Shown here: positions 8,059-63,682 of the stretch, in pieces
Layout of the letters: every line of letters begins with the position of its first letter
Numbering within the stretch: the stretch's first letter is position 1
Translations under genes and position numbers: made by a program
IMG/VR virus record: IMGVR_UViG_3300009108_000751
Location: 62,001-126,000 of that record
DNA length: 64,000 nt
Direction: 5' to 3' (one strand)
Notes under the pieces: generated by a model
The model's input: only the letters and a program-made list of their open reading frames with translations
What the model was told of the DNA's origin: nothing
Database searches by the model: none

Positions 8059-9609
8059 ATGTATAGACGACTAAAGGCTACTAAAGACACTTACATTACT
8101 AATAAGATTATTCGTAATAGTTTTAGGGCAACTGATTCCAATGTAGGCGAAGGAGCTACTCTAGATCTTTTTAAGCTTTATAATGAGAATAAGATTGCTG
8201 GTGATGACACTCCTATTGAGCTTACTCGGATTCTAATAAAATTTGACTTGAATCCCCTGCGCGCCCTCACGGGAAGCATACTTGACATAGACAGCACTTC
8301 CTTTAGGTGTGACTTAAAGCTTCACGATGTGTACGGAGGTCAAACTCTTCCTTCTAATTTCAAGGTTGCAGTCTTTCCTCTTTCACGATCATTTGATGAA
8401 GGAGTAGGAAGAGATGTTGTAAAGTTTCAAGACATCGACGCCGCCAACTTTATCACATCATCTGTGACAAATGCATCTCCCACGACCTGGCACCTTACAG
8501 GGGCAAATAAGCAAGGCCTTTTGGGTGCAGCGGATCTGGATATAATATCGTCTGGTAACTTAAACGATGGCGACGGTGTCGCTTTCTTGTATAGCGAGCA
8601 GACTTTCTTAGATGGTACTGAGGATCTTTCTGTCGATGTGACAAAGGTAGTTTCTGCTACATTAGCAAACCAGATACCTGATTTTGGATTTAGAATATCC
8701 TTTTCAGGAACGCAAGAGACAGATACAAAATCTAGATTTGTTAAGCGCTTTGCATCTCGCCACAATAGCAACACAAGAAAACAACCCTCTCTAGACGTTA
8801 GATATGACGATACTATTCAAGATTATCATAAGTCCTTCTTTTTTAACCTCTCAGGATCAATCTTTCTAAACAATTTTGAAAGAGGGCATGCGGCAAACGT
8901 AGTATCAGGCGCCGCCCTAACCCAGATCTCAGGCGACGATTGCATGAATTTAAAATTGCAGACGGGGTCGTACCAGAAAGTAGTATTGGCATCGCAGCAC
9001 TCTTACCCTGGAGGAACTTTGTTTTCCACCGGCGTATACTCAGCTTCATTTGCAATTGATAGCTTTGGTTCTTCTTCTGTAGACAATAACAATACGCTTG
9101 AGGATTTCATAAGGGACAGCGGATCAGTAACATTCACAACGTTTTGGCAGTCTATAGATGAAACAGTAGGTTACCATACGGGAAGCCTTAAAGTTATGGC
9201 TTCTGATACAACAGCATTTGATAATGATCCTGTTAGGTACACCCTGAATATAGCAAATCTTAAGGGAGCTTATAAGTCTGGACAAAAAGTTAGGCTAAGA
9301 ATGGTTGCTTTTGATGCAGACGAACAAGTAAAAGCCCTTAAGCTTCCGCTTTATCGATCTAGCATGATTTTAACCAAGTGCTATTATAGAATTAGAGACA
9401 CATACTCAGACGATGTAGTTATTCCTTTTGATGATGGCGACGGATATAATGGTACCCTTATGTCAACCGATTCAAAAGGAATGTATTTTGATATTTTTAC
9501 CGACGACCTGGACATGGGAAGAGTTTTCACAATTGATGTGAAGATAAAGAGAGATAACTCAACTCAAATATTCAAAAATGTCGGAGGAACTTTTAGGATA
9601 GATCCCTAA
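8059..9609 (+). CDS. Baseplate/virion structural protein with DNRLRE-like N-terminal beta domain
   Basis: KATKDTYIT...RILIKFDL...LKLHD...PLSRSFDEGVG pattern; baseplate operon context; GAGGT RBS at 8048. Confidence 0.55.
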   Translation: MYRRLKATKDTYITNKIIRNSFRATDSNVGEGATLDLFKLYNENKIAGDDTPIELTRILIKFDLNPLRALTGSILDIDSTSFRCDLKLHDVYGGQTLPSNFKVAVFPLSRSFDEGVGRDVVKFQDIDAANFITSSVTNASPTTWHLTGANKQGLLGAADLDIISSGNLNDGDGVAFLYSEQTFLDGTEDLSVDVTKVVSATLANQIPDFGFRISFSGTQETDTKSRFVKRFASRHNSNTRKQPSLDVRYDDTIQDYHKSFFFNLSGSIFLNNFERGHAANVVSGAALTQISGDDCMNLKLQTGSYQKVVLASQHSYPGGTLFSTGVYSASFAIDSFGSSSVDNNNTLEDFIRDSGSVTFTTFWQSIDETVGYHTGSLKVMASDTTAFDNDPVRYTLNIANLKGAYKSGQKVRLRMVAFDADEQVKALKLPLYRSSMILTKCYYRIRDTYSDDVVIPFDDGDGYNGTLMSTDSKGMYFDIFTDDLDMGRVFTIDVKIKRDNSTQIFKNVGGTFRIDP

Positions 9610-12600
9610 TGTCTTCGAAAGACAGATTACAAAACCAGCGCCCAGGCGTTTTTAGACCTTCCGTCGTGAGGGATGAAGGCGGTGGAGCAGGAGTAGTTAG
9701 ATTCATTACCCGGGCCGATCTTGATGCTGGGATATCTTATGAAGACTATTTCATTTACGATGAAAGTACGGGAATAAAATCAACGCAACAAATCCCGGTT
9801 GATTTTAGCAAGTTTCAAAATCATACATTTTTTAATTCTGCCCAAGCTAATGTCAATGTCACTTTTAACAGTCTTATTAATCACTATCCTTTCGATGGAT
9901 CACGAAAAGAATTAGAAAAGTTTTTGAACGGCCTTACGGGTTTTGATAATTACGTTCTTTCACAGTTTCCTACAAATTTAGGTGCACTCGTATTCTCCGG
10001 ATCGACGTCCGGAGCAGCAGATTCTGGGACATACATCGAAGTAAAAGACTTTTCAGGTGCAGATTTTGTCGACTTCTCATCAGATCGATCTGGAAAGAGC
10101 GTGCTCGCCCTGGATGAGAAAAGCTATACTGTAGAAACTCAGATTTTCCCTGCACCTCTAGCCAACGGTAATGAAGTACTTTTTCAAAAAGTTTCTGGTA
10201 GTACAAACGGCTACACGATGGCTATGAAATCTAACGTATCTACGACGGCTGCCGAAGTGATGTTTGCAATACGATCTGGGTCCGCCAACTTAATAGTATC
10301 AGCTTCTATCCCTAAAAATGAATTTAGCCACATTGCTGCTGTTTACGACAGATCTAAAGATGAGGGCAGGTTAAAGCTATATCTTAATTCTAAGCTTGTT
10401 GGGACTTCTTCCAATACTGCGATTTTCGGGCCCATAGACTTCAATAATTCATCTCTCTTTATTGGAACCGGCAGCATTCACCAGGGAATCTTGCATGATA
10501 GCGCAAACTTCACCCCCAGCAGGACATTCTCTGGCTCTTTGGACGAAGTGAGAATTTTTCAAGAAGCAAGAACTGAGCATCAATTAAAGTCCAATCAAGA
10601 GAGAAATGTATTCGCATCAGATCCGCTTCGTCTTTACTATAAGTTTAATGAGCCCTCATCTAGTTTCGGAGATAATTCAATTGTCTTAGATAGCAGCGGA
10701 AAATCCCTGCATTCTCGTGTATCTAACTACACGGTTTATAACAGGGTTACATCAAGTTATCCGGCAGCTCTTTCGTCTGAAGAAAGAAAATTCAATCCGG
10801 TGCTTTTCCCACAATTTGAAAAAGTTATCGATCTTAACGAAAAGTTGCTGGCATCTGCTAGCACATATGATAATGCGAATCCAAACCTTATAACAAGGCT
10901 TGTTCCATCACACTATTTTGATGAGGGCAAAAATTACTTTGCCATGAACACTACAGACGGTGACCTGATACTGCCGTACACCGGATCTTCAATTCCGGGA
11001 TCTGGTGATCTAGGCAGCTCACAGGTTCTAACTGCAATGCTTTTTGTGTGGGCTAAGTTTTTTGACGAGCTTAAAACATCCACAGACCAGTTCTCTAAAG
11101 TCTTAGATCCTGCATACACAAGCGATGAAGGGCTATCAGATTCATTCATTATGTTCCTCGTGAATCATTACGGTTTTGAACCGCCACCTATTCTTACAAA
11201 AGCGACCGCAGAGCAGTACTTTCACGGAGAAAATGTAAAGGGAACCTATACTAACATAGCAGAAAGCCTGCAGTCTATCAGGAACCAGATCCTTAGAAGG
11301 TTCCTTGTAAACATAAAGGATATCATTAGTTCGAAAGGTACGATCCACAGTGTCAAAGCAGCTTTGAGAGCTACTGGCCTGGATCCTGATATCTTAGTTA
11401 GAATCAAAGAATACGGCGGCCCTAAAAAATTTAGCTTCGCTCAGATGAGAACCAATCGATCAACCATACAGTCTTCTATAGACTTTAGTGGGTCAATGAA
11501 CAATACCCGAAATGAGACCATCGATGCGCAAGGATTCACAACATCATCTCCTCGGTTAATAGCTGACTTTTTGACAGGATCGAGAAGGTCTGTAGGTTTT
11601 CCTGAGCCCGTAGGTACATTTGTTCAGCCAAATACAACCTTTGGTGGCTACCACGGAGTAAGCAATGATCTCTCCGACGGATTGTTAACATCTGGGTCTT
11701 GGTCTTATGAGGGAATATATCGATTCCCAGTATCGGGTAGCTTTGCGCTTACACAATCAGCGGCCAGAATCCACATAACAGGAACAACAGCACCTTCTAC
11801 CAAGCACGGTGTCGCCGCCAACTTGCTAGTGATGTCCGGCGCGTCTCCTTCTGTTAAGCTCTTTCTTCGGGCTACCACAGATGCCTATACTGCCGCTGCA
11901 AAGAGGCCTCTTGAGATAACGCTTCCTGGGCCAGATGTGATGGATGGTGAAAAATGGAATCTTTCCTTTGGCAGGATAAGAAACGACCAGGCAGGAACTC
12001 ATCTCTCATCATCGTACTTCTTGAGATGTGCCAAGCAAGAAGGTGGCAGGATATTTGAGTCTTACACGACAGCTTCTTTTTACAAGGAAGACCCGACAGG
12101 CACTGCGTCAAAAGTAGTTTTCCAAAAATCAGGATCCCTAAACACCTCAGGATCGTTTATTGTCATCGGATCCCAGTCTCTGGATACATCTGCAAATTTA
12201 TTCTTAAACGGGCCAGATATTGATGATCAGGCCCAGATAACAAATTTCAGCGGCGAAGTAGCTCAGGTCCGATTTTGGTCAAAAGCGCTCACTGAACCTG
12301 AGTGGAAAGAACATGTAAGGAATCCAACTTCTGTAGGCGTTGAAGCCCCTAGAAAGAATTTTAATTTCAACACAGCGATTACAGGTGCTTTTGAAAGGCT
12401 AAGAATGGATCTTTCCATAGACCAGCCGATCTCAGCATCAGATTCCTCCGGCCAGATTATCTTGACAGACTTCTCGCAAAACAATATTCATGGCACAGGA
12501 TCTGCTTTTGAAGCTTCTAAGACACTGTTTAATTTTGAGAAAGTCAACTTCACTACACTTCCGCCCGCATTTGATGATCTTGAAAACTCTAACAAGATTC

Positions 12601-13121
12601 GACCGCGAAGCTTTGTAAGCTCTTCTAATATTACTGATTTTAGCGCTGCAAAAGCTCCTCTTTATGAGATACCTCCCAACGATCAGCCCCAGGATGACGC
12701 AAGGTTCTCTATAGATTTCTCAGTAACGTCTGCGTTAAACGAAGATATTGTCACTATGTTTGGAACGCTTGACGAGATAGATGACGCTCTTGGCGGAGCC
12801 AATTTACAGTTTTCAGCTGATTATCCCCAACTCCAGGTTTTGCGTGATAATTACTTTAACAAGCTAGAGGAAAAAGTAAGCTTTAAGCAATTTTTAGAAT
12901 TCTTTAGGTGGTTTGATACATCTGTTGGAACCATGCTTGAACAACTCGTTCCAAAAAATTCTAATTTCTTAGGTGTTAACTTTGTTATAGAGCCTCACAG
13001 TCTAGAGCGAGCCAAAGTTCAGTACCAGTATAATGGACAGTATATCGGCGAAGACTTTAGGACTGATCTTAAGGGCCAGTATCTATTACAGCTAATTGAA
13101 GGAAGAGCGAGCAAGTTCTGA
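9609..13121 (+). CDS. Large baseplate protein with LamG/concanavalin-like domains and gp7/gpI-like KGT segment
   Basis: FSHIAAVYD...LKLYLNSKL...FSGSLDEVRIF and FSGEVAQVRFWSKALT (LamG); IISSKGTIHSVKAAL. Confidence 0.65.
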   Translation: MSSKDRLQNQRPGVFRPSVVRDEGGGAGVVRFITRADLDAGISYEDYFIYDESTGIKSTQQIPVDFSKFQNHTFFNSAQANVNVTFNSLINHYPFDGSRKELEKFLNGLTGFDNYVLSQFPTNLGALVFSGSTSGAADSGTYIEVKDFSGADFVDFSSDRSGKSVLALDEKSYTVETQIFPAPLANGNEVLFQKVSGSTNGYTMAMKSNVSTTAAEVMFAIRSGSANLIVSASIPKNEFSHIAAVYDRSKDEGRLKLYLNSKLVGTSSNTAIFGPIDFNNSSLFIGTGSIHQGILHDSANFTPSRTFSGSLDEVRIFQEARTEHQLKSNQERNVFASDPLRLYYKFNEPSSSFGDNSIVLDSSGKSLHSRVSNYTVYNRVTSSYPAALSSEERKFNPVLFPQFEKVIDLNEKLLASASTYDNANPNLITRLVPSHYFDEGKNYFAMNTTDGDLILPYTGSSIPGSGDLGSSQVLTAMLFVWAKFFDELKTSTDQFSKVLDPAYTSDEGLSDSFIMFLVNHYGFEPPPILTKATAEQYFHGENVKGTYTNIAESLQSIRNQILRRFLVNIKDIISSKGTIHSVKAALRATGLDPDILVRIKEYGGPKKFSFAQMRTNRSTIQSSIDFSGSMNNTRNETIDAQGFTTSSPRLIADFLTGSRRSVGFPEPVGTFVQPNTTFGGYHGVSNDLSDGLLTSGSWSYEGIYRFPVSGSFALTQSAARIHITGTTAPSTKHGVAANLLVMSGASPSVKLFLRATTDAYTAAAKRPLEITLPGPDVMDGEKWNLSFGRIRNDQAGTHLSSSYFLRCAKQEGGRIFESYTTASFYKEDPTGTASKVVFQKSGSLNTSGSFIVIGSQSLDTSANLFLNGPDIDDQAQITNFSGEVAQVRFWSKALTEPEWKEHVRNPTSVGVEAPRKNFNFNTAITGAFERLRMDLSIDQPISASDSSGQIILTDFSQNNIHGTGSAFEASKTLFNFEKVNFTTLPPAFDDLENSNKIRPRSFVSSSNITDFSAAKAPLYEIPPNDQPQDDARFSIDFSVTSALNEDIVTMFGTLDEIDDALGGANLQFSADYPQLQVLRDNYFNKLEEKVSFKQFLEFFRWFDTSVGTMLEQLVPKNSNFLGVNFVIEPHSLERAKVQYQYNGQYIGEDFRTDLKGQYLLQLIEGRASKF

Positions 13122-14512
13122 TGAAGACAGGTAAAAATACATCAAAATTCCAATATAATTCATCAAAAGAGAACCAGATAACGGGTTCAAGCGCCCAGTT
13201 TCCTGTTCGTAGACTCTACGGGGGCATACCACCTGTCGCTGCTACTTCAACACTAACGTTTACCGGGACAGGGTCTATCGGAGCCACTATAACATTAGTA
13301 AATACTGCCCAGCTAAGCAGGACCTATACAGTCGCTTCTTCACTCGACGCTGCAGCAAGAGAGTTCCGAGCAACATCTGCGACCCAGGCCCGAGATGATC
13401 TGACAACATGCATCGAAGCTTCAGCAGGCCACAATGGAACAATCATCACTTCAGGGACCTCGACCACCATATTGACCCTCACCCAAGCTGAAGTCGGTAA
13501 GGCTGGAAATACTATAATTCTCTCAAGCAGCTTGAACGTGACCCTGTCTCCCCTAACAGGGAGCTTCTCAGGTGGTCAGGATGGTCGCGACCAGAAATAT
13601 AACCCGCATGCTAAAGAGTACGTTATTGGTGGGGGCTCCGGGAGCTTCACAGCCCAGATTGATCCTTATCGTCAAGGTGTTTCAATACTAACAGATAATC
13701 AGCGCGCCCAGGCAGCACTTCCAACTTTTGATCCAAAGAATACAGGCATTGAAGAAAAATATATTTTTGGGCAGTCCACGCTCTCAGAATTTGCTTGGCC
13801 CTTCATAGAGAAGCCAAACATGGAAAACATCGGTGCAACCGAAGGGCTTTTTGCTTTTGCTCAGGGTAGTATAGCAACTTCATCATTTGTCGATCTAGAG
13901 TATGAAGTTATACAGGCAGATAAGCGATATATTCTAGGAAACATCCTTAACGGGACTGCGGAAGTTTTATCAAGCGTCCGATCAGCATTTGATCCAAAGA
14001 TTTTCTCTCGATCCCTTGATCCAATAGGATCTGATACCCGAACAGGAATCAAAGCGGATATCATGGAGGGAAATTCTTTCTATATGAAGGGTACAAGCAC
14101 GGTTAAGCCCTTAATCCCAATGACTGTGTTTGGCAATTCTCCTTTCGTAGATGGATTTGGAGTTGCAGGTATTGGAATCACAGGTAATCCTGCCAGTATG
14201 TCTCTAGCATCAGGTACAGTTTTTGCTCCTAATAGAAGACATGCCCTGGGAGAGAAATTATACTTTAATGAGACTTACGGCCCAGTACCCTTCGATGAGA
14301 CAGATTTTGAGAGCAGAATGTTTACAAAGGCCCAGATAAACAGTCTTAATTTAGATGCTGACTTTAAGACTGCGCTGCTTAACAATGTGTCAGGATCCAC
14401 AGAAGATCTAATCCCAGACGGTTTTAAATCCGCACGAACAGGATTTATATTTACAAACAATGGATTAAACGTGGACTCCATCGCGTTTGGAGGCCTGAGA
14501 AGAGATGCCTAA
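13121..14512 (+). CDS. Virion structural protein, S/T/G-rich, unknown fold
   Basis: Coupled TGATG start; composition and context. Confidence 0.5.
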   Translation: MKTGKNTSKFQYNSSKENQITGSSAQFPVRRLYGGIPPVAATSTLTFTGTGSIGATITLVNTAQLSRTYTVASSLDAAAREFRATSATQARDDLTTCIEASAGHNGTIITSGTSTTILTLTQAEVGKAGNTIILSSSLNVTLSPLTGSFSGGQDGRDQKYNPHAKEYVIGGGSGSFTAQIDPYRQGVSILTDNQRAQAALPTFDPKNTGIEEKYIFGQSTLSEFAWPFIEKPNMENIGATEGLFAFAQGSIATSSFVDLEYEVIQADKRYILGNILNGTAEVLSSVRSAFDPKIFSRSLDPIGSDTRTGIKADIMEGNSFYMKGTSTVKPLIPMTVFGNSPFVDGFGVAGIGITGNPASMSLASGTVFAPNRRHALGEKLYFNETYGPVPFDETDFESRMFTKAQINSLNLDADFKTALLNNVSGSTEDLIPDGFKSARTGFIFTNNGLNVDSIAFGGLRRDA

Positions 14513-17500
14513 GAAGAGACCAGAAAGACTATTAAAGTATGACCTAAAGAAGAAGTTCACGTCAGTGAGCGGTAGCGTATACTTCTCTTCGGGAGACCCT
14601 ACTGAGCACTTGATTCTATGGGCTCGGGCAGCTACAAAAGCCGCTGTGCCCACTACAGCTGAAGACGCTTCCGGCGTAGGGCACTCTGTGGAATTCCAAG
14701 ATTCAGGAGGCTCGGGCGGAGGCGGTCAAAACCAGACTGCTCTTACTACACCCTTCTCTTCTCTAAATCTAGCTAATGTAAATTCCGCGGCTCGATTTCC
14801 TAAGTCATCTACTGTCTATGTAAATGTGGAAGATGCCGCCGATCTCTCATTCGGTGACGGATCAACAGACAGCTCATTCAGCTTATCGACTTGGGTTCAA
14901 ATAACGAGCGCATCTTCTACGGTAGGGCTAGTCCAGAAAGGCTTAGGAACCGGCCTCTCTCCTAATGAATATAAAATCTTTTATCATGATGGTGATCTCA
15001 CGGGTTCTCTTTCTGACGTTTCTGCAAGTGCCGCTCTTAACTTCTTGGCGTCCCCTGGCGCATTATTTTCTGAGAATACTTGGCACCACATAGCATTCAC
15101 ATACAATAATTCACTTACCAAAACCGGAAGAGGTAAGTTCTACTTTGACGGTAGGTTTATTTCGGGTTCGTGCAGTGAAACTGGAACTTATGTTGCTATG
15201 GAGGCAGGCGCCGGCGACCTTAGAATAGCAGAAAACATGAACAACCAACCGATGGAGTTCATGCAAGCCGCAATTTGGACAGGAAAGGTTCTCTCTGCAG
15301 AGGATATCAATGCGCTCTACAATGCCTCAAAGGGTATAAAAGATGTTGCTAAGCAGCGTGTTTACGTAGGGTCTACTGGTATCACCTCGCTCCCAGTGCG
15401 CCCCTATCTGCAGTCAATCGATAATGCTACAGGATCTTATCCTTCCACATATCGGCTCGGTGATTCCAGGACAGGTCACTATTCCTCCTCTTTCGACGAC
15501 ACCTCGGCGATAAGGTTTCAAAAGCAAGGCACAAATTCAGGCCTAAGTGCTCAAGTAACCCTAGGGCAGCAACTTAGACAGGGAAGTCAGTACTCTGGAT
15601 CTCTGGTGGTTGCCCCTAATTCACTACCTGATCTAGCGCTAACTAGTTCTGCTACTAGTGTGATACCAGGGGTCTCTGACGCCCGGGTTCGATTTACCCC
15701 AGGTGACGATTTCACTCCTTATGTTGAAGCCAACCAATACGCCGCCGACGAAACGGCAACAGGAGATGCATTTTGGGCCACGGGAACACTTCCTTCTATA
15801 GTGGGGCAAGGTTTTACGAACCCCTTGTGGTCAAAAACAAAGATTGAGATTGACCTTAATCCCACGACCACATCTGAGATCTTTTGGTCGACAGGATCGT
15901 CGGCGTCTCCTATTGGATCTGGTTTCTCGTACTATAATTTCGATCTTAACCAGTGGGAGATGTTAGGATGTGATATTACTGGAAGTGCGGTTGATTACGT
16001 TAACGCTATTCCTGCGGTCGCTACGGGATCTCTTCTGGCATATGTTCCTGGGCAAAACACATCCTGGGCAGGCCTAGATTCAGTTAGTGATATTATTCGA
16101 CTCCAGTCCGGATATCCTACTACTTACGCAGGCTTCCCGTCAGCCACTCAGTTTAATGCAACTTCTTCGCAGCTTTTTGATGTAAGCTCTGTTATAAGAC
16201 ACCCTTTTATGGTCGAAAAAATCGCCTATGAGTTTAGCGGATCTCTTCCCCTAGGGACACAAAATAACCTAGCAGAAAAGACGTATTTCAATTTTGGGAT
16301 CCTCAATCATCACCAAAATTCTCGACTTTTAAATTCCTTTGCTACAACTTACTTTAACAGTGGGACAAACCAAACAGGTACTCCCAGCACAAATCCATCC
16401 AACTATAGCATGGAGCAAATGCGAGCAGTTGCTGAACGACGCATTACTGTTCCTAAGGACCTCGTCGCCAATGGTGTAGTTGCAATATGTGAAAATTTTG
16501 TTACCAAGCCTATGCAGAGAAGAGATCTGAATATTCAAGTTCCTGCATCACCTTCCCCTTCTGGCAACTCATACAGGGGAACGACGGGATCATTTGTGCT
16601 TAGCATGTCTGCAAATACTCCAGTATATGCGCCAACACTCCAGTATCATAAAGCTTTCACTTCCGGCGGAGGCAGAAAAGGGTGGTCGGGAAACAGTAAT
16701 GATCTTTATAGGTTTTTGTCTTACCAGGGCGGCGGCCGAAGCGGCCTTACTAACGGGATAGACGGAGGTCTTCTTTCTACTGGGCGATCATTCGCAAGAT
16801 CGAATGCTGCCGCAAATTTATCAGGCTCACTTAAAATAATTAGATTTGATGTTGCAACTTCTGGGTTAGGATTCCAGGTATACGATAAAGTTCGACAAGA
16901 TTCACCTTATCTTCTCATGCCCGGTGACAAGCTTAGTTTTTACTGGGCTAACCAGAAGTGGATCGAGTACTCTAATACAACTGAGGATGATGTTAGCAAG
17001 TTTAAGCTCCAGATACACCCAGGACAAGGGAAGCTCGTCCTATATGGCTCCATGATCCGCGATGGAAGAGAGTTTCACCAAGGGCTTAACCAGCACTTGA
17101 CATCGGATGCCATCCACGAGGACGTTCAAAGTTCTGCTACAGATAGCACACCGTACTGCCTCGACCAGTTTAACGTAGAGTATTATCAAACCTATTCAGG
17201 GTCTTACAGTGACTACGCTGTGAAGGGAATACAGTCTAGAAATCCCACGGTAGGCGCTGGAAGGTTAAGCCTAGTACCTCACAGCGTCGTCGGGGGTCAA
17301 GCAGGTACCACAGGTTCTATTTTAAGGGGCGTTCGCTTGGTGGATCTGAATGAACGCTACTTGGATTCCCTGTTCGTGGATCCGAACACTGTTGCCAGGG
17401 TAAATGAGCAAGCTTTTGTGAAACAGCTCAATAACACAGTAGGAACAATATCGCCTGACAGCTCCTTGGGATATTATGTGCTAGGCAGTGCAGATAGCAA

Positions 17501-18404
17501 TTCTAGCGTTTCCAAGTCAGACAGAGTTTGGCCAAGGTCATTTCCTTTTGATGACAGGTATGGCGGAAGCAACCTTGAAAGAGTGGAATCACCGTCTGCA
17601 GCAAGAGTATTAAAAGATTTTACCAATACCGACAACGGAAAAACTCGCAAAAGAAGCGCTAGTATGCTAACAGTCCTCGCAGGACCTCAAGATTCAGGAG
17701 ACTCAAGCACTCAAGTCTACACAGTTATGGACTTTGTGAACACTACTACTTATGAAGCCCTCCAGGAGCAAAGCAGGCAGTTTCTTAAGTACTTCTTTGG
17801 CTTTGGAGACAGTATTGATTATAACCTTCCTCGTGCTGTAAAAAATATGGGGACAGGAACAAACAACTCTTTTCACATCGGCAACGATGTGGAGATCCGA
17901 GGCTTTAAGTACGGGCTCATAAGTGCACTACCGACATTTACTTCCGCTGTTTATCGAAGAGATAGGTTCGGACAAGCTCGGGATATGTTTGAGCAAAGGC
18001 AGTACAGCGCATTTGAGAAGCATAGGTTTGAAATGGAAAGTCCTAACCCTAGGGACAACGAAGGAGAAAGAAAGGACATTCCAGGGCAGTTAGCTTCTGC
18101 TGTGTCCATAGAATTTAAGAAAGTTTCTGCAACAGGTGAAGTCGCTGAAATATTACCCTTGACCAAAACAGATTTTGAAAACATAAAAGCCCTTACTAGA
18201 AATAACCTTCGAGGAGTCTGGGGAAGAGGTTGCAACACTGATCCTTTCGCTAGATCCCAAAGACCATACTTTGATTCTAATCCTCTATTCCCATCGGGAA
18301 GCTTCGGCCAGCAAGGCGAGGAAAAACAAGTTGAGTCAATGCTTAATGATTTAAACCAGGGAAGTATTCTTTCCGATATCACACAAACCACGTTTGGAAG
18401 CTAG
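14505..18404 (+). CDS. Large LamG-domain virion (baseplate/receptor-binding) protein
   Basis: FSLSTWVQ...WHHIAFTY...FYFDG...AAIWTGKVLSAEDINALYN is a LamG-like domain. Confidence 0.65.
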   Translation: MPKKRPERLLKYDLKKKFTSVSGSVYFSSGDPTEHLILWARAATKAAVPTTAEDASGVGHSVEFQDSGGSGGGGQNQTALTTPFSSLNLANVNSAARFPKSSTVYVNVEDAADLSFGDGSTDSSFSLSTWVQITSASSTVGLVQKGLGTGLSPNEYKIFYHDGDLTGSLSDVSASAALNFLASPGALFSENTWHHIAFTYNNSLTKTGRGKFYFDGRFISGSCSETGTYVAMEAGAGDLRIAENMNNQPMEFMQAAIWTGKVLSAEDINALYNASKGIKDVAKQRVYVGSTGITSLPVRPYLQSIDNATGSYPSTYRLGDSRTGHYSSSFDDTSAIRFQKQGTNSGLSAQVTLGQQLRQGSQYSGSLVVAPNSLPDLALTSSATSVIPGVSDARVRFTPGDDFTPYVEANQYAADETATGDAFWATGTLPSIVGQGFTNPLWSKTKIEIDLNPTTTSEIFWSTGSSASPIGSGFSYYNFDLNQWEMLGCDITGSAVDYVNAIPAVATGSLLAYVPGQNTSWAGLDSVSDIIRLQSGYPTTYAGFPSATQFNATSSQLFDVSSVIRHPFMVEKIAYEFSGSLPLGTQNNLAEKTYFNFGILNHHQNSRLLNSFATTYFNSGTNQTGTPSTNPSNYSMEQMRAVAERRITVPKDLVANGVVAICENFVTKPMQRRDLNIQVPASPSPSGNSYRGTTGSFVLSMSANTPVYAPTLQYHKAFTSGGGRKGWSGNSNDLYRFLSYQGGGRSGLTNGIDGGLLSTGRSFARSNAAANLSGSLKIIRFDVATSGLGFQVYDKVRQDSPYLLMPGDKLSFYWANQKWIEYSNTTEDDVSKFKLQIHPGQGKLVLYGSMIRDGREFHQGLNQHLTSDAIHEDVQSSATDSTPYCLDQFNVEYYQTYSGSYSDYAVKGIQSRNPTVGAGRLSLVPHSVVGGQAGTTGSILRGVRLVDLNERYLDSLFVDPNTVARVNEQAFVKQLNNTVGTISPDSSLGYYVLGSADSNSSVSKSDRVWPRSFPFDDRYGGSNLERVESPSAARVLKDFTNTDNGKTRKRSASMLTVLAGPQDSGDSSTQVYTVMDFVNTTTYEALQEQSRQFLKYFFGFGDSIDYNLPRAVKNMGTGTNNSFHIGNDVEIRGFKYGLISALPTFTSAVYRRDRFGQARDMFEQRQYSAFEKHRFEMESPNPRDNEGERKDIPGQLASAVSIEFKKVSATGEVAEILPLTKTDFENIKALTRNNLRGVWGRGCNTDPFARSQRPYFDSNPLFPSGSFGQQGEEKQVESMLNDLNQGSILSDITQTTFGS

Positions 18405-56284: not shown

Positions 56285-56904
56285 AATTATTGACCGAGTG
56301 CATGACATTTGAATATGATTCGAATCTTATTAAAGAGCAGGCGCAAACTGAGGATGGTAGATTTCTTATGAAGGGAGTTTTGCAGAAAGCAAATACTCTT
56401 AACCAGAATGGGCGAGTTTATCCCCTTGATATTCTCCGGAGAGAGGTGCAGAACTACCAGCGATTTATCGATGAAGGTAGAGCTCTTGGCGAACTAGATC
56501 ACCCGGATACTTCTGTTGTTGAACTAAAGAATGTTTCTCATGTAATTCGAGAAGCACATATGGATGGCGACATCTGCTACGGAACTCTTGAGGTCCTAGA
56601 TACACCGAACGGGCAAATATTAAAGAGCTTGGTTGAGAGTGGTATCAAGATAGGCATTTCTTCTCGCGGCGTAGGCTCTACGCGAAGCGAAGGCGGCCAC
56701 CAAGTTGTTCAAGATGATTTCCAATTAATTTGCTGGGATATCGTGTCAGAGCCTTCAACACCAGGTGCCTTCGTAATGAAGGAAGGTAGAGACCTAACAC
56801 CGGATGAGATCGCCCAGGTTCAAGCTTATTTTGGTCCAGGAGACAAGATCAACCGGATCATGAATTCAATTTTAGAATGGAATGGAGACGCAAATGCCTC
56901 TTGA
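56281..56904 (+). CDS. gp21: Prohead core protease, T4 gp21-like
   Basis: NQNGRVYP, ALGELDHP (catalytic His), GISSRGVGS (catalytic Ser), WDIVSEPST. Confidence 0.93.
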   Translation: MKLLTECMTFEYDSNLIKEQAQTEDGRFLMKGVLQKANTLNQNGRVYPLDILRREVQNYQRFIDEGRALGELDHPDTSVVELKNVSHVIREAHMDGDICYGTLEVLDTPNGQILKSLVESGIKIGISSRGVGSTRSEGGHQVVQDDFQLICWDIVSEPSTPGAFVMKEGRDLTPDEIAQVQAYFGPGDKINRIMNSILEWNGDANAS

Positions 56905-57349
56905 TTACCCAAACTGGGGCGCAGGTGATGTCCCATCTTACCAACTCTCAGGTGTGCCATTTGTTACATCATCAAATGGTGCTGAAGTGAGCACAACCCC
57001 AGTCAAGGTACAATTACCTGGCGTCTCAAGATTTCTAGTTATTAAAGAAACCGCAGGCCAGGATCTGAGAGTAGGCTTTTCCGTTGCTGGTGTCAACGGC
57101 ACCGGAGGCGTTTCTGGCTCGGTTCCTACGAATCCAGCTGGTGGTGAGTCTGCTGCTGACAGAAGAAACTATTTTGTCGTAGAAGCTAATACTACTTCTC
57201 CCCGACTAGAGATTAGATGCAAGACCCTTTACTTCCGTCGCGACGGTTCCTCCGACGCCGGATTTTCCATCATCGCAGGAATCACACCAATAGGTACCAG
57301 CCAGTTCCCGCCTCTGACAGGATCCAGCGGATATGACGGGATCGGATAA
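56894..57349 (+). CDS. Beta-rich head-associated hypothetical protein
   Basis: GGAG RBS favours ATG 56894; PSYQLSGVPFVTSS start; head module context. Confidence 0.55.
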   Translation: MPLDYPNWGAGDVPSYQLSGVPFVTSSNGAEVSTTPVKVQLPGVSRFLVIKETAGQDLRVGFSVAGVNGTGGVSGSVPTNPAGGESAADRRNYFVVEANTTSPRLEIRCKTLYFRRDGSSDAGFSIIAGITPIGTSQFPPLTGSSGYDGIG

Positions 57350-60597: not shown

Positions 60598-62514
60598 ATG
60601 TCTAAGTTTTCACTCGAAACGCTAGCCGAAGGAATTCGGTCGCGTCACATGGGTGAGGAGAACTCCCGCTTGGTCGAAAAGTGGTCTCGCACCGGTCTGC
60701 TCCGCGGCCTGGAATCAACAAAGCGCGAAAACATGGCGCGCCTTCTTGAGAACCAGACTGCAGAGCTTCTTCGTGAGCAAAGCACAATCGGCACAGGCGG
60801 CGGAGCTGGCACCGCTTCTGGTGACCTTCGCGGTTTCTCCAATATCGCCTTTCCAATCGTTCGTCGTGTATTCGGCGGACTTGTCGCAAATGAGCTGGTA
60901 TCCATCCAGCCCATGAGCTTGCCTTCTGGCCTGCTCTTTTATCTTGACTACACCTACGGTTCTAACGTTGGTGGTGACGCATCTCTCACAACGGGCGATG
61001 CAGGAACCTACGACAAAGAAACGTATCAGCGTGGTCAATCCATCTATAACAACCCAACTGGCAAGGGCGTACGCTCTGGTTCATTGGCAACAGGCGGTCA
61101 GTATGACTTGGTCGGTGCAACTTACTCTAAGGTGCACAGCTCCTCGATCTCACCAACCGTTATGTTTGCTGGTGCACACGGTGCAAACTCATCCTTGACA
61201 TCCGGTTCGTTGTGCCATGCCACAGGTTCAGATGCTAAGTTGCTCCAATTCGATCCTCAAGTTCTTGACTTGATCGAAAACGATCCCGGTCTTGACGGTG
61301 ATGGACGCTTCTGCATCGTCATTGTGGACGTCACTGATGCACCCTTTAACAATGTCGATCTTACGAACGCCAAGGACATTTCCTTGTTCTCAGCAGTTCC
61401 TGAGGTTCGTACAGGTGTTAAAGAGCTTGGTGCTAGCTTCCAGGGCGGCAAAGGTATTCTTAACCTCCGTCGCTTGAACCAGCTTGGTACGTTTGCGAAC
61501 AACAAGTTTACCGCAGATCCCATGGTAACAAGAAGCACATCAAATGCTGCTCTCTTGACAGTTATGTCTGGTAACTTCAGCGGTAAAATTGATGCCGGTG
61601 ATGCTGCTACAGCATACCTCTCAGCATCATATGCCATTGGCCCAACATTGAATGTAGAAGACGGTTCTGGTTCTACCCTTACCATTCCTTCATTCGAATC
61701 TGATTTCGGTACTACACCTTCACCAGTGATCCCTGAAATCGACATTAAGGTTGAGTCCATCGCAGTTACAGCTGCTACACGCAAGCTGAGAGCTCGTTGG
61801 TCGCCAGAATTGGCACAGGACCTTAACGCATACCACAGCCTTGACGCTGAGGTTGAGTTGACACAGATCCTTTCTGAGCAAGTTGCTCTTGAAATCGATC
61901 GTGAAATCCTGAATGACCTGCTTAGCGAAGCCCAGGGCGCAAACCTTTACTGGTCACGTGCTCCAGGCAAGTTCCTGAACAAGGAAACAGGCGCCGAAGT
62001 TAAGTTGAATGACAGCTTATCTGCAGGTCCTCGTTTCACAGGCACAGTTCGCGAATGGTACGAGACCCTGGTCGAGTCCGTTATCGATGTTGCTAACACC
62101 ATCCACCGCAAGACACTCCGTGGTTCCGCGAACTTCGTGGTCACCTCTCCGGATGTCTGCACAATGTTCGAAGCTTCAGTGATGTATCGCCCAAGCCTCA
62201 GCATTGACAGCGAAGGTCAGGTTTCCTCCCCATTCAGCCTCGGTGCTGAAAAGGTTGGTACCTTGAGCAACCGCTTTACGGTCTACAAGGACCCATACTT
62301 CCCTCGCAACAAGATTCTTGTTGGTTATAAGGGTGGTAGCTACCTTGAGACAGGATACGTTTATGCTCCGTATGTTCCGCTGATCGTCACACCAACGATC
62401 TTCGCGCCAGAAGACTTCACCCCTCGTAAGGGCGTGATGACTCGCTACGGCAAGAAGATGGTTCGCGCTGACTTCTACGGTACCGTTACGGTTGCTGACT
62501 TGAACGTCATCTAA
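60598..62514 (+). CDS. gp23: Major capsid protein, T4 gp23-like, with ~250-aa insertion
   Basis: LLENQ, AFPIVRRVF, VSIQPMSLPSGLLFYLDY, IPEIDIK, TRKLRARWSPELAQDL, EIDREIL, YAPYVPL, GVMTRYG motifs. Confidence 0.96.
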   Translation: MSKFSLETLAEGIRSRHMGEENSRLVEKWSRTGLLRGLESTKRENMARLLENQTAELLREQSTIGTGGGAGTASGDLRGFSNIAFPIVRRVFGGLVANELVSIQPMSLPSGLLFYLDYTYGSNVGGDASLTTGDAGTYDKETYQRGQSIYNNPTGKGVRSGSLATGGQYDLVGATYSKVHSSSISPTVMFAGAHGANSSLTSGSLCHATGSDAKLLQFDPQVLDLIENDPGLDGDGRFCIVIVDVTDAPFNNVDLTNAKDISLFSAVPEVRTGVKELGASFQGGKGILNLRRLNQLGTFANNKFTADPMVTRSTSNAALLTVMSGNFSGKIDAGDAATAYLSASYAIGPTLNVEDGSGSTLTIPSFESDFGTTPSPVIPEIDIKVESIAVTAATRKLRARWSPELAQDLNAYHSLDAEVELTQILSEQVALEIDREILNDLLSEAQGANLYWSRAPGKFLNKETGAEVKLNDSLSAGPRFTGTVREWYETLVESVIDVANTIHRKTLRGSANFVVTSPDVCTMFEASVMYRPSLSIDSEGQVSSPFSLGAEKVGTLSNRFTVYKDPYFPRNKILVGYKGGSYLETGYVYAPYVPLIVTPTIFAPEDFTPRKGVMTRYGKKMVRADFYGTVTVADLNVI

Positions 62515-62606: not shown

Positions 62607-62705
62607 CATATCTAATAGTAGGCCCGTCACATTGCATAAGGGTGAACTCGCCACCGTGCCGGAATCATGCGAACAAAATAAAGGAGAAAATTATGCCAAA
62701 GGTTA
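62607..62705 (+). repeat. 99-bp perfect direct repeat, copy 1 (promoter-like motif + leader + RBS + first codons)
   Basis: CATATCTAATAGTAGGCCCG...AAAGGAGAAAATTATGCCAAAGGTTA identical to 63150-63248. Confidence 0.97.
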
Positions 62706-63061
62706 TTATTTCTGATGATAAAGGTCTGAACCAAACCGCAGGTTCGGGGCTGGAGTCTAGGAGCGCTCACTATAGTAGCTACGGGACTACTACAGCTTTA
62801 GCAACAGGTTCTTTCCCGCTTCTTCCTGCGGGAATAGTAAACACTGTTGACAGCACTAACAACGCACATGGTGTTAGATTGCCCAACGCTGCAGGAGCAG
62901 GTCAGATCATGATCGTTAGAAATGTAGACAGTGCTCAGGACTGCGTTATTAGAAATCAAGCTGAGACAGGTGCCATCCTTGTCACGCTCGGCGAAGGTAA
63001 GACTGCTCTTTTCGTAAGTACAGCTTCTGGAAATAACTGGTCTGGAAGTCAGCTCGACTAA
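62693..63061 (+). CDS. Small beta-rich virion protein, candidate capsid decoration/head fibre (true start ATG 62693)
   Basis: AAGGAG RBS; MPKVIISDDKGLNQTAGSG paralogous with the next gene; VRLPNAAGAGQIMIVRN. Confidence 0.55.
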   Translation: MPKVIISDDKGLNQTAGSGLESRSAHYSSYGTTTALATGSFPLLPAGIVNTVDSTNNAHGVRLPNAAGAGQIMIVRNVDSAQDCVIRNQAETGAILVTLGEGKTALFVSTASGNNWSGSQLD

Positions 63062-63089
63062 AAGAAAACTCAAAAGTGTTATTGCAATC

Positions 63090-63115
63090 AAGGTGCTCAA
63101 TCGAGCACCTTTTTT
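63090..63115 (+). terminator. Intrinsic terminator
   Basis: AGGTGCTC-AATC-GAGCACCT followed by TTTTT. Confidence 0.85.
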
Positions 63116-63149
63116 GTTTGAATATTTTCTTCTTTTTTAAGATCTTCCC

Positions 63150-63248
63150 CATATCTAATAGTAGGCCCGTCACATTGCATAAGGGTGAACTCGCCACCGT
63201 GCCGGAATCATGCGAACAAAATAAAGGAGAAAATTATGCCAAAGGTTA
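63150..63248 (+). repeat. 99-bp perfect direct repeat, copy 2
   Basis: Identical to 62607-62705; period 543 bp. Confidence 0.97.
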
Positions 63249-63682
63249 CGTATTCAGATTCGAAGGGGCTCGTCCAGACGTCAGGTGCTGGGATGGCTCT
63301 AACCGGCTTCATGCATGGTCAAAAATGCCCACAGAAGTCGGTAACAAGCACAGACACGCTTACTGTTGAAGACAGTGGCAAGTTAATTACCCTGACGGGA
63401 TCAGCATTTACTTTGTCGCTGCCCAGTGTCTCAGCGGCAAAAGGATGCCACTATACGATCGTTGCTGGTCAAGCTGCGAATTATGTCCTTTCTGAGCTCG
63501 TCGGAACTGACGACAACGTTTTGACGATGGTAAGCGTAAATGCGTCTGCTACTGAAAGAGATCACGCTTTTACCACAGCTACTCTGAGTGGCGGAGCTAT
63601 CGGAGACAGGTTTTACGCCGTCTCTAACGGAACTTGGTGGGTCATCACGGCCTTCGCCAATGCTGCCGTAGCCGCCGCATAA
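63236..63682 (+). CDS. Small beta-rich virion protein, candidate capsid decoration/head fibre (true start ATG 63236)
   Basis: MPKVTYSDSKGLVQTSGAG; TLTVEDSGKLITL...LSLPSVSAAKGCHYTIV. Confidence 0.55.
   Translation: MPKVTYSDSKGLVQTSGAGMALTGFMHGQKCPQKSVTSTDTLTVEDSGKLITLTGSAFTLSLPSVSAAKGCHYTIVAGQAANYVLSELVGTDDNVLTMVSVNASATERDHAFTTATLSGGAIGDRFYAVSNGTWWVITAFANAAVAAA

Follow-up and report, generated by a model that had tools for sequence, protein, structure and literature searches.

A Ser/Thr-Gly-Ser motif over-represented in outward-facing virion proteins of aquatic T4-like phages that share a conserved glycosyltransferase pair: a possible site of sugar attachment

Among the closest described systems is the virion glycosylation reported for mycobacteriophages, in which phage-encoded glycosyltransferases (GTs) modify the phage's own structural proteins in the cytoplasm (Freeman et al. 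2023, Cell Host Microbe, as cited in PMC12619734 and PMC12801897). As summarised in PMC12619734, those glycans sit at the C-termini of capsid and tail-tube subunits, whereas the candidate sites examined here are a defined tripeptide scattered through the predicted folded parts of baseplate, fibre, sheath and capsid-insertion proteins of T4-like myoviruses of Bacteroidota, Cyanobacteria and Rhodothermus, for which no chemistry has been shown. Bacteroidota possess a general O-glycosylation system with the sequon D-(S/T)-(A/I/L/V/M/T), likewise a short three-residue sequon used across many unrelated proteins, but that system works in the periplasm with a lipid-linked glycan, while here the hosts span three phyla and the enzymes are soluble phage-encoded GT4 proteins, and its sequon is not enriched in the motif-bearing proteins (31 against 50 expected). 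In autotransporter heptosylation by Aah/TibC (BAHT family), many serines of a beta-rich surface protein are O-glycosylated in the cytoplasm, and the reported recognition element of short beta-strand, short loop and short beta-strand is what the structure models show for [ST]GS; one relative (the sequence designated L018) also has heptose-pathway-like genes next to its GT pair. However, the enzymes here are GT4 (Pfam Glycos_transf_1) and not BAHT, and the substrates would be many different folds instead of one repeat array.

The GtfA/GtfB O-GlcNAc transferase pair of serine-rich-repeat adhesins resembles the present case in comprising two adjacent GT-B proteins with Ser/Thr acceptors rich in small residues, but GtfB is a non-catalytic partner, whereas both GTs here keep the EX7E motif, no DUF1975 domain was found in the Pfam search, and the substrates of GtfA/GtfB are long disordered serine repeats and not isolated tripeptides at turns. 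Flagellin glycosylation islands with nonulosonic acids in Campylobacter and Aeromonas contain a NeuB-type synthase and a CMP-sugar cytidylyltransferase next to transferases, and modify many Ser/Thr sites with hydrophobic neighbours on the exposed domain of a surface polymer, although no strict sequon is known there and the transferases are Maf-type, not GT4. Finally, in phage DNA glycosylation, as with the T4 alpha/beta-glucosyltransferases and the 5hmC hypermodification clusters (bioRxiv 10.1101/2023.12.21.572611), phage-encoded GT-B enzymes lie beside sugar-nucleotide biosynthesis genes, with sugars that include heptose and Kdo. Those clusters sit next to a C5-methyltransferase plus 5mYOX, or next to a thymidylate-synthase-like hydroxymethylase, and DNA glycosylation would not explain a protein motif.

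The stretch analysed here (the window) comprises 64,000 nucleotides, positions 62,001 to 126,000, of the IMG/VR record IMGVR_UViG_3300009108_000751, a part of a 236-kb genome. The initial annotation had claimed from the sequence alone that the tripeptide [S/T]-G-S marks surface virion proteins only, as a candidate O-glycosylation sequon for the adjacent GTs. The observation itself is confirmed and holds well beyond this window. [ST]GS occurs 111 times in 13 tail, baseplate, fibre, capsid-insertion and decoration proteins against 27.6 +/- 5.1 expected from composition shuffles, and 2 times against 6.8 expected in the other 25 proteins. The earlier hand counts were reproduced for the 516-, 1170-, 463-, 1299-, 746-, 438- and 829-aa proteins, the capsid protein and the small 155-, 139- and 165-aa proteins, while the 2292-aa protein has 32 sites (about 30 had been given) and the 1020-aa protein 18 (about 19 had been given), and two single sites had been missed, at residue 568 of the gp6-like protein and residue 149 of a 354-aa protein. 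As had been stated, no site is present in either GT, RuvC, primase, Mre11-Rad50, TerL, portal, protease, the 476-aa scaffold-like protein or the trio of 992-, 1546- and 680-aa proteins (32238..41920; all features given here are on the + strand). The 1546-aa protein has 27 SG/TG dipeptides, none followed by S. The absence from the trio, whose function is unknown and which gave no Pfam or PHROG hit, is not significant on its own (0 against 2.4) and shows lack of enrichment, not depletion. For the 1546-aa protein, only sub-threshold ADP-ribosyltransferase-like leads were obtained.

Within the baseplate and tail module, the 516-aa protein (8059..9609) has 5 sites at residues 71, 265, 302, 354 and 374 (against 0.65, p=0.0005), and is followed by the 1170-aa LamG-domain baseplate protein (9609..13121; Laminin_G_3, 1.2e-19) with 13 sites against 1.8, 5 of them in or next to the one LamG domain. 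The 463-aa tail-module protein (13121..14512) has 5 sites against 0.95 (p=0.002), and the 1299-aa tail protein with a Laminin_G_3 domain (14505..18404) has 14 against 2.85. In the 2292-aa fibre-like protein (18427..25305) the count is 32 against 10.5, with some sites in an internal repeat about 188 aa long, and the 1020-aa fibre-like protein (25314..28376), with 18 against 4.4, shares repeat modules with it. Further sites are found in the 746-aa fibre-like protein (28895..31135; 7 against 2.5, p=0.01), the 438-aa protein (42639..43955; 3 against 0.7, p=0.036, weak on its own) and the 829-aa protein (43976..46465; 5 against 0.96, p=0.0015), in which Laminin_G_3 is detected at threshold. In the head module, a 155-aa Gly-rich protein (56882..57349) has 2 sites against 0.46, not significant alone, and the 638-aa major capsid protein of the gp23 family (60598..62514; Pfam Gp23, 6.5e-75) has a modest 4 against 1.05 (p=0.015). 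Two small proteins encoded after the capsid gene (62642..63682), of 139 aa with 2 sites and 165 aa with 1 site, are possibly decoration proteins, a function inferred from position only. By contrast, the gp25-like and gp6-like inner baseplate wedge proteins (5719..8049; PHROG baseplate wedge hits) are not enriched, with 0 and 1 sites (the latter against 0.54).

Loss of the signal after correction for composition had been named beforehand as grounds for rejecting the sequon, and this did not occur. Shuffles gave p <= 0.002 for the large proteins and a pooled z of about 16, and the count also exceeds a dipeptide (Markov-1) expectation (111 against 67). The signal is specific to the tripeptide, since SGS is 60 against 15.3 and TGS 51 against 12.2, while SSG, GSS, SGG and GGS are about 1x and other S/T/G permutations are at or near expectation (at most about 2x). 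In xGS only S and T are enriched, and in [ST]Gx only S is strongly enriched. The extended form is hydrophobic-[ST]-G-S-hydrophobic (29 against 2.2), whereas the SAS/SSS variants said to recur are only mildly enriched ([ST][AS]S 72 against 52). An artefact of composition, low-complexity linkers, internal repeats or a DNA-level word such as GGATC was considered, as the proteins are rich in S, T and G, 14 sites lie in duplicated modules, and GGA is over-used for the Gly of the motif (49% against 32%). However, this reading is refuted by the above controls together with the findings that 99 of 113 sites have unique contexts, that all four Gly codons and both Ser codon families are used, and that the same amino-acid motif recurs in other phages.

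Orthologues at 85% and 65% identity keep the motif, 120 metagenomic homologues of the 1170-aa protein average 11.3 sites against 1.9, and 120 homologues of the 516-aa protein give 739 against 106.5. The over-representation in outward-facing virion proteins of this large group of phages is 4 to 8 times. At a site with 96% occupancy S and T swap (SGS 39, TGS 27). The same enrichment is found in Flavobacterium phage immuto, Microcystis phage Mel-JY01 and Rhodothermus phage RM378, in whose tail blocks unbiased scans place SGS and TGS as the top, or among the top, abundant tripeptides with the same flank hydrophobicity, and all three carry the same adjacent GT4 pair. Persistence of the motif in relatives without the GTs had likewise been proposed as a refuting observation, and in the phages examined the outcome favours the association, as T4 (8 against 13.5) and P-HM2 (18 against 16.3) lack both the pair and the enrichment, even though P-HM2 fibres are rich in S, T and G. 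In LR756508, only GT1 is detectable, the enrichment is about 2x, and its 1400-aa homologue of the 1336-aa protein of Mel-JY01 lacks the motif at nearly all of Mel-JY01's sites. However, this co-occurrence rests on four positive lineages, two distant negatives and one partial case, which are not phylogenetically independent, and the gp6 tree does not resolve where LR756508 sits. Within the 1170-aa family, the excess comes entirely from about 17 conserved columns, and sporadic sites (144 in 75 sequences) match the random expectation, so there is no sign of ongoing gain at short evolutionary range.

Within proteins, sites favour outer or variable parts. All 4 capsid sites (160, 202, 209 and 357) lie in the lineage-specific insertion, the roughly 127-377 stretch, of which residues 127-377 do not align with the immuto capsid protein and roughly 127-330 and 185-354 do not align with those of T4 and P-HM2, respectively. 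The immuto sheath has 7 sites against 1.3, all in residues 62-275 and none in the conserved core 418-708, and tube, hub and tape measure have 0. The RM378 sheath has 1 against 0.6, so this is not a uniform coat; the claim of surface virion proteins only is approximately right, with the motif concentrated in the baseplate periphery and fibres, although surface versus internal location is inferred from homology and not shown. AlphaFold2 models (pLDDT 80.7 for the 516-aa and 78 for the 1170-aa protein, the latter returning LamG/pentraxin in a fold search) place 16 of 18 sites at beta-strand/loop junctions, that is at strand ends, 2-3-residue hairpin turns and strand starts, including three textbook 2-3-residue hairpins with G-S in the turn. 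Buried beta-turn positions had been listed in advance as evidence against a sequon, and the sites are indeed strand/turn junction residues, but solvent exposure was not computed.

These positions support a serious rival, less favoured and on balance doubtful, in which [ST]-G-S is a lineage-specific structural idiom, the preferred tight-turn or strand-cap sequence of the beta-rich outer domains of this clade, inherited and kept for folding or stability and not modified, with the GT4 pair acting on phage DNA or host surface glycans. [ST]-G-[ST] is intrinsically turn-friendly, S/T at position 1 could equally be a hydrogen-bond cap, sites are conserved by position within families with sporadic sites only at the random rate, and outer domains are also the beta-rich ones, so that surface and beta-sandwich are confounded. 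On the other hand, T4 and P-HM2 have equally beta-rich fibres and baseplates, rich in S, T and G, without enrichment, and the LR756508 1400-aa protein, homologous to that of Mel-JY01 over 1136 aa, uses ordinary loop residues at Mel-JY01's sites. Sites are not shared by position between the Mel-JY01 and immuto homologues, but the density is. General turn propensities favour N/D-G and G-N/T about as much, yet NGS, DGS, SGN and SGD are not enriched, and the motif recurs in unrelated folds (LamG, fibre repeats, outer sheath domains and the capsid insertion).

The two GT4 genes are adjacent at the start of the window. GT1 (1..864; Pfam Glycos_transf_1, 8.6e-11) is cut at its 5' end by the window, the full gene encoding 414 aa and starting 380 nt upstream (positions 12-1256 of the sequence designated L004), and its EX7E motif is E278..E286, with E278 invariant in 9 homologues. 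Its orthologues are adjacent to GT2 in immuto, Mel-JY01 and RM378. GT2 (861..2027; 388 aa, Pfam Glycos_transf_1) is a core gene of a large aquatic phage clade with more than 3300 homologues, the top 120 at 44-96% identity and many on 100-365 kb contigs, and R271-G-E273-G-x-G-L-P-x-L-E281 is conserved in at least 97% of 121 sequences, while [ST]GS is depleted in the family (9 against 24.7). The pair lies directly upstream of a sigma-like gene and baseplate genes in five window-clade contigs, a synteny anchored by the gp25-like and gp6-like genes, with the same gene order in the sequences L018, L022 and L023. Different sugar-nucleotide clusters flank the pair in this phage, immuto and L018, which is the layout of a glycosylation island with a conserved core and variable elaboration. 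In this phage the cluster, comprising NeuB, a CMP-sugar cytidylyltransferase, a dehydrogenase, an epimerase and a GT2-family GT, looks like a nonulosonic-acid pathway. Action on DNA has precedent, since phage GTs beside sugar-nucleotide genes hypermodify DNA with heptose or Kdo (bioRxiv 10.1101/2023.12.21.572611), and many GT2 homologues carry precomputed hits to Pfam GT4-conflict, and GT1 of the window scores below the cut-off of that family. However, no 5mYOX, C5-methyltransferase or hydroxymethylase gene lies within 10 kb of the GT pair in the sequences L020 or L018, and immuto already has a 7-deazaguanine DNA-modification system elsewhere in its genome.

Taken together, hydrophobic-[S/T]-G-S-hydrophobic is a maintained surface signature of the exposed virion proteins (baseplate periphery, fibres, outer sheath domains, capsid insertion and small head proteins) in a large clade of aquatic, distantly T4-like and often jumbo myoviruses. 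The preferred reading, held only tentatively, is that it serves as the acceptor site for phage-encoded O-glycosylation carried out in the host cytoplasm. In this view, the conserved GT4 pair would put the first sugar or sugars on the hydroxyl of position 1, or one sugar on each of the two hydroxyls, with the motif presented at a tight turn or strand end, and the neighbouring sugar-nucleotide genes and extra GTs, which differ between phages, would elaborate a lineage-specific glycan. The interpretation in the initial annotation, a phage-defined sequon written by the GT4 pair, is partly supported, as every sequence-level prediction of a sequon that was examined holds. What the analysis demonstrates is the enrichment, its specificity, its clade distribution, its restriction to outer proteins and domains, its position at strand/loop junctions, the conservation and catalytic motifs of the GT pair and the gene neighbourhood, but there is no chemical evidence of any modification, no sugar having been detected, and it is by inference that the motif is held to be modified at all, that the modification is a sugar, that the GT4 pair performs it, and which hydroxyl is used. 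Position 1 is a guess, made because S and T interchange freely there while position 3 prefers S > T > A.

It is also possible, but unlikely, that the motif is recognised by a different lineage-specific factor unrelated to the GTs, through another modification of Ser/Thr (phosphorylation, acylation or ADP-ribosylation) or docking of an assembly chaperone or a decoration protein. The statistics show only that a hydroxyl-Gly-hydroxyl turn is selected on outer virion proteins and say nothing about the chemistry, only 64 kb of the 236-kb genome was examined, so that other candidate enzymes may exist, and immuto encodes GroES/GroEL. However, no kinase, acyltransferase or similar enzyme is encoded in the window or next to the tail module, and the GT pair is the only modifying enzyme seen in conserved synteny with the baseplate genes and the only one seen here that is shared with immuto, Mel-JY01 and RM378.

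The window covers positions 62001-126000 of a 235,681-bp contig (IMGVR_UViG_3300009108_000751), and all long ORFs within it are on the + strand. Pfam and PHROGs searches identified two GT4 glycosyltransferases, the first of which is cut by the window edge, a late-sigma-like gene, gp25-like and gp6-like baseplate wedge proteins, three LamG-domain proteins of 1170, 1299 and 829 aa, RuvC, a primase, an Mre11-Rad50 fusion, TerL, a T4-type portal, an S77 prohead protease and a gp23-type major capsid protein, although PHROGs gave nothing for most of the tail proteins or for the RM378 cluster. PDB sequence searches returned only T4 capsids and generic GT4 enzymes. The nearest isolates by capsid protein are an uncultured 484-kb phage (LR756508, 50% identity), Flavobacterium phage immuto (45%), Microcystis phage Mel-JY01 and Rhodothermus phage RM378, and hence this is a distant T4-like jumbo myovirus. 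It may be related to the aquatic moraphages, which have GT families in their core genome (PMC12619734), although membership in that group was not examined.

Counting of [ST]GS reproduced the values of the initial annotation almost exactly, with 5, 13, 5, 14, 32, 18, 7, 3, 5 and 4 sites in the 516-, 1170-, 463-, 1299-, 2292-, 1020-, 746-, 438- and 829-aa proteins and the capsid, respectively, and 2, 2 and 1 in three small head-module proteins. No site was found in the GTs, the replication and recombination enzymes, TerL, portal, protease, the scaffold-like protein or the 992-, 1546- and 680-aa trio, while single sites in the gp6-like and 354-aa proteins had not been mentioned in that annotation. 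Composition shuffles of each protein had been proposed in advance as the control on which the enrichment should stand or fall, and it stands: the 13 motif-bearing proteins together contain 111 sites against 27.6 +/- 5.1 expected, whereas the other 25 proteins contain 2 against 6.8. [ST]GS is also under-represented in GT2 (861-2027) and its 120 homologues (9 against 24.7 expected), but since T4 structural proteins are somewhat below expectation as well, this may be a general background effect rather than avoidance of self-modification.

The signal belongs to the tripeptide and not to the composition, since SGS is found 60 times against 15.3 and TGS 51 times against 12.2, while SSG, GSS, SGG, GGS, STG and TSG are near 1x. 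Among xGS tripeptides only S and T are enriched, and among [ST]Gx only S is strongly enriched, with A and T at about 1.5-1.9x. Dipeptide bias alone does not account for the excess, as 111 sites are observed against 67 under a dipeptide-preserving (Markov-1) expectation. The flanks are hydrophobic, with L, I or V at position -1 in 44% of sites and L, I, F or A commonly following the motif, and the five-residue form [LIVF][ST]GS[LIVFA] occurs 29 times against 2.2. A DNA-level word such as GATC or GGATC is ruled out by the use of all four Gly codons and both Ser codon families with only a mild GGA preference, and internal repeats or low-complexity linkers are ruled out because only 14 of 113 sites are copies within repeated fibre modules, leaving 99 unique contexts. 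Such copies reflect modules shared between the 2292- and 1020-aa fibre-like proteins (window 18427-28376), for example G-L-SGS-LTRLTDGTSY (seven copies) and DSVVAT[IL]-SGS-AFTGG (four copies), with a spacing of about 188 aa in the 2292-aa protein, which points to duplication and exchange of a fibre repeat unit. Thus, the initial observation is confirmed, the signal is at the protein level and far beyond chance, and an artefact is excluded.

The enrichment is a clade trait and not a general property of T4-type fibres. Orthologous loci at 98, 85 and 65% identity exhibit the same per-protein excess and keep most sites, with S/T swaps at position 1 and occasional SAS, SSS, SGA or SGT variants. Analysis of 120 metagenomic homologues of the 1170-aa protein (41-98% identity) revealed 6-18 sites each, with a mean of 11.3 against 1.9 expected, and 120 homologues of the 516-aa protein carry 739 against 106.5. 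In the 1170-aa family, about 17 alignment columns hold the motif in at least 20% of sequences, with the spectrum SGS > SGT > SGA > SSS/SAS > TGS, while the remaining sporadic sites (144 in 75 sequences) occur at about the random rate, and hence at this evolutionary range the excess is made of conserved sites. At one site with 96% occupancy in the 516-aa family, SGS (39) and TGS (27) alternate.

Further out, the baseplate and fibre blocks of three isolates show the same behaviour, with observed/expected values of 3/0.5, 5/1.3, 4/0.6, 5/0.7, 3/0.8, 6/1.4, 8/1.5 and 26/5.9 in immuto, 4/0.4, 11/1.4, 4/0.9, 4/0.5, 6/1.4, 9/0.6 and 5/0.6 in Mel-JY01, and 21 against 3.8 over seven neighbouring genes in RM378. 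The densest carrier observed is a 373-aa hypothetical protein of immuto (immuto 135075-136196; L030:2075-3196, where L030 is a stretch of the immuto genome), which has 12 sites against 1.26 expected, several only 6 residues apart (TGSLSTSGSLGVTGS), has no PHROG hit, and would be a good small substrate for a glycosylation assay. In an unbiased scan of all tripeptides, SGS and TGS are the top abundant outliers in Mel-JY01 and among the top in RM378 and immuto, and the hydrophobic flanks recur in all three. By contrast, 29 T4 structural proteins have 8 sites against 13.5, and 15 P-HM2 structural proteins, including fibres with 11-14% each of S, T and G, have 18 against 16.3. The head region of LR756511 contains no tail genes and was uninformative.

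A requirement of the fold is also ruled out, as the 1400-aa protein of LR756508 aligns with the 1336-aa protein of Mel-JY01 over 1136 residues (27% identity) but has 2 sites as compared to 11 in Mel-JY01, with ordinary loop residues at nearly all of the Mel-JY01 motif positions. The immuto homologue has its sites mostly at other positions, and hence density is conserved at long range but positions are not.

The distribution of sites further distinguishes outer from inner parts of the virion. In the window capsid, all four sites fall in the insertion region that does not align with the T4, P-HM2 or immuto capsid proteins. In immuto, the sheath has 7 sites against 1.3, all within residues 62-275 and none in the conserved region 418-708 that aligns with T4 gp18 334-651, which is taken from the published T4 sheath structure to be the inner core, an assignment not examined here. 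The immuto tail tube, hub and tape measure have 0 sites, its replication gene block has 6 against 7.1, and the gp25- and gp6-like inner wedge proteins are not enriched in any lineage. The motif therefore marks outward-facing proteins and domains, most densely the baseplate periphery and fibres. However, it is not a uniform coat, since the capsid enrichment is modest and the RM378 sheath has 1 against 0.6.

AlphaFold2 models, built from alignments of 75 and 69 sequences with mean pLDDT of 78 and 80.7, cover 18 sites in the 1170- and 516-aa proteins. In three sites (196 and 223 in the 1170-aa protein, 302 in the 516-aa protein) the S/T is predicted to be the last residue of a strand and G-S forms or lies in a 2-3-residue hairpin turn, in three (458, 656, 71) the S/T is an isolated bridge residue followed by coil, three (130, 287, 627) follow a strand end, five (308, 695, 847, 265, 354) sit directly before or at a strand start, two (709, 841) are in loops and two (963, 374) are inside strands. 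The predicted secondary structure places 16 of 18 sites at strand/loop junctions, and the motif is a strand/turn junction element. Whether the sites are buried had been raised beforehand as a point that could overturn an acceptor role, but only secondary structure and pLDDT were obtained and solvent accessibility was not measured; hairpin turns are usually exposed, although this is not shown here. A fold search with the 1170-aa model returned only LamG/pentraxin domains, and the LamG region of this protein (residues about 120-330) holds five sites.

GT1 (414 aa) and GT2 (388 aa) are distant paralogues that match Pfam Glycos_transf_1 (PF00534/PF13692) with 42.1 and 32.8 bits, respectively, against a gathering cut-off of 26.4. 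Both retain the EX7E motif in the C-terminal domain, with E273-x7-E281 of GT2 conserved in at least 97% of 121 homologues and E278-x7-E286 in GT1, where E278 is invariant in 9 homologues. Only GT4 families were hit in Pfam and NCBIfam, and PDB hits by sequence are generic GT4 enzymes (TreT, BshA and PBCV-1 B736L). The adjacent pair is conserved in immuto, Mel-JY01 and RM378, and in RM378 the second gene is annotated as hypothetical but is homologous to GT2 (blastp 1e-8). GT2 has more than 3300 homologues, the top 120 at 44-96% identity, many of them on contigs of 100-365 kb.

In the window and in five window-clade contigs (L001, L003, L018, L022 and L023), the gene order is GT1, GT2, small genes including the sigma-like gene, gp25, gp6 and then the motif-bearing proteins, so that the GTs are genetically linked to structural genes as in mycobacteriophage-type virion glycosylation, while in immuto and Mel-JY01 the pair lies 30-80 kb from the baseplate genes. 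The sigma-like gene of the window (2303-3070) encodes a 255-aa protein with a weak PHROG match to late sigma factor (E 2.9e-4), and the GTs may be co-regulated with late genes.

Immediately next to the pair lie sugar-nucleotide genes that differ between phages. In this phage, a cluster directly upstream of the GT4 pair (contig positions 55750-60701, 1.3-6.3 kb before window position 1; L020:4131-9082, where L020 is the upstream stretch of the same contig) holds a CTP_transf_3 CMP-sugar cytidylyltransferase, a GT2-family glycosyltransferase, NeuB with a SAF domain, a UDP-Glc/GDP-Man dehydrogenase and an NAD epimerase/dehydratase, which looks like a nonulosonic-acid pathway. Four ORFs before it (370, 329, 296 and 386 aa) and a 289-aa ORF inside it have no Pfam hit, and a 274-aa ORF next to GT1 was not searched. 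In immuto, aminotransferases, an acetyltransferase annotated as 'pilin glycosylation protein', a methyltransferase, an epimerase and three more GTs are located downstream. In L018 (the 364-kb JGI contig Ga0642623_00014), the upstream cluster (L018:1-8535) contains three epimerase/dehydratases, an RpiB-cytidylyltransferase fusion, a PfkB kinase, a class II aldolase, a cupin, a transaldolase and a methyltransferase, and is reminiscent of a heptose or other higher-sugar nucleotide pathway. Such a conserved transferase core with variable sugar supply is the layout of a glycosylation island.

Relatives lacking the GTs or carrying other GTs had been named in advance as informative for a link between the enzymes and the motif, and one such contrast was found. 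LR756508 has a GT1 homologue, but no GT2 is detectable using either the window or the immuto protein as query, the latter at E <= 0.1, and its baseplate block shows only about 2x enrichment (10 against 5.1), with no different tripeptide standing out. This single natural contrast fits a GT2-motif link. However, the gp6 tree leaves LR756508, immuto and Mel-JY01 unresolved, and a secondary loss is not shown.

Taken together, a short motif that is fold-independent, specific to outer surfaces and to a lineage, strict about a hydroxyl at position 1 and a small hydroxyl at position 3, and found together with a conserved and catalytically intact GT pair embedded in sugar-pathway genes next to the tail operon is best explained, albeit tentatively, as an O-glycosylation acceptor site. 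The enrichment and its extension to a large phage clade are results of the analysis, whereas modification of the motif by the GT4 pair is an inference that is plausible and directly testable on three cultured phages but unproven, and glycan mass on virion proteins was not measured. The interpretation in the initial annotation, of a sequon for a glycan coat written by the GT4 pair, is partly supported.

The main rival, considered unlikely but serious, is that [ST]GS is simply the preferred turn sequence of this clade and that the GTs act on DNA or host glycans, since phage GT-B enzymes with neighbouring cytidylyltransferases put heptose and Kdo on 5hmC (bioRxiv 10.1101/2023.12.21.572611) and many GT2 homologues carry Pfam hits to GT4-conflict. 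Against this rival, T4 and P-HM2 show no such idiom, and LR756508 shows that the fold tolerates other loops. Furthermore, no base-hydroxymethylation genes (C5-methyltransferase with 5mYOX, or a ThyS-like hydroxymethylase) appear among the Pfam hits within 10 kb upstream in L020, among the called genes around L018 or in the window, although the rest of the 236-kb genome was not seen and similarity of the GTs to T4 beta-GT or a DNA-binding groove was not examined structurally. Immuto also encodes a separate, full 7-deazaguanine DNA-modification set (QueC, QueD, QueE, FolE, QueF and DpdA; NC_055915 18607-37015) and an unusually long (423-aa) 'thymidylate synthase' whose nature was not examined, and its DNA is probably modified independently of the GT island. 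A different modification of the motif or a docking role is possible, but is regarded as improbable.

The proposed mechanism resembles other cytoplasmic bacterial O-glycosylation of beta-rich surface proteins, such as Aah/TibC heptosylation of strand-loop-strand motifs, and mycobacteriophage virion glycosylation, but it is not a member of those families. The predicted strand/loop position of the sites recalls the acceptor serines of BAHT autotransporter heptosyltransferase substrates, but this is a resemblance in the predicted substrate only and does not settle the comparison either way, while the enzymes are GT4 and not of the Aah/TibC family. Unlike GtfA/GtfB, in which one catalytic GT4 is paired with a non-catalytic GT-B partner, both proteins keep EX7E, and in place of a long serine-rich repeat substrate the sites are isolated tripeptides, 99 of 113 with unique flanks. 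Sites are dispersed through the proteins rather than located at the C-termini of capsid and tail-tube subunits, the immuto tube having none and the capsid sites being internal. The Bacteroidota sequon D-(S/T)-(A/I/L/V/M/T) is under-represented in the motif-bearing proteins (31 against 50.3 +/- 6.6), and N-x-S/T, the sequon of HMW1C/PglB-type N-glycosylation, is not enriched (136 against 121.5 +/- 10.2).

Virion glycosylation by phages has so far been demonstrated in mycobacteriophages (Freeman et al. 2023), at the C-termini of capsid and tail-tube subunits as cited in PMC12619734, and what would be new here is its governance by a phage-defined sequon, of which we know no example and of which full-text literature searches found none, nor any description of this motif. 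If [ST]GS is such a sequon, glycosylation sites on uncultured phage virions could be predicted from sequence alone across thousands of metagenomic genomes, given more than 3300 homologues of GT2 and more than 2200 of the 516-aa protein. It would assign a function to a core GT pair and to the variable sugar-gene islands of aquatic jumbo phages, currently annotated as host cell-wall or DNA-modification genes, would raise testable questions about the role of a tail glycan coat in, for example, adsorption, protection from proteases or stickiness to particles, and would offer a compact cytoplasmic O-glycosylation tag for glycoengineering. In a broader and somewhat less secure view, which is possible but less likely than not, a globally abundant clade of aquatic T4-like and jumbo phages would use its own universal O-glycosylation code, in which the conserved pair of cytoplasmic GT4 enzymes recognizes hydrophobic-[S/T]-G-S-hydrophobic turns on any outward-facing virion domain and hypervariable sugar-pathway islands next to the pair build phage-specific glycans, including nonulosonic acids. 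This would result in sugar-coated baseplates, fibres and sheaths whose glycan type varies between phages much as O-antigens vary between bacteria. Even if the motif turns out to be purely structural, it is a sharp and easily scored lineage marker for outer virion proteins.

RM378 encodes a UDP-galactopyranose mutase homologue (RM378 112985-114136; L016:12985-14136, where L016 is a stretch of the RM378 genome), so this thermophilic relative may make galactofuranose, another lineage-specific sugar in a phage that has the GT pair and the motif. The three large consecutive proteins of 992, 1546 and 680 aa (window 32238-41920) have no Pfam or PHROG family and no [ST]GS, and an ESM Atlas feature search for the 1546-aa protein gave only sub-threshold leads to ADP-ribosyltransferase families (DRAT, NarE, Scabin-like, Tse2; scores 0.55-0.61). 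They could be internal or ejected virion proteins like T4 Alt, but this is only a lead. Among the 13 motif-bearing proteins, His/Trp tripeptides (WHH, HWH, TWH) are also top outliers at very low counts, possibly representing HxH metal sites like those of T4 fibre tips.
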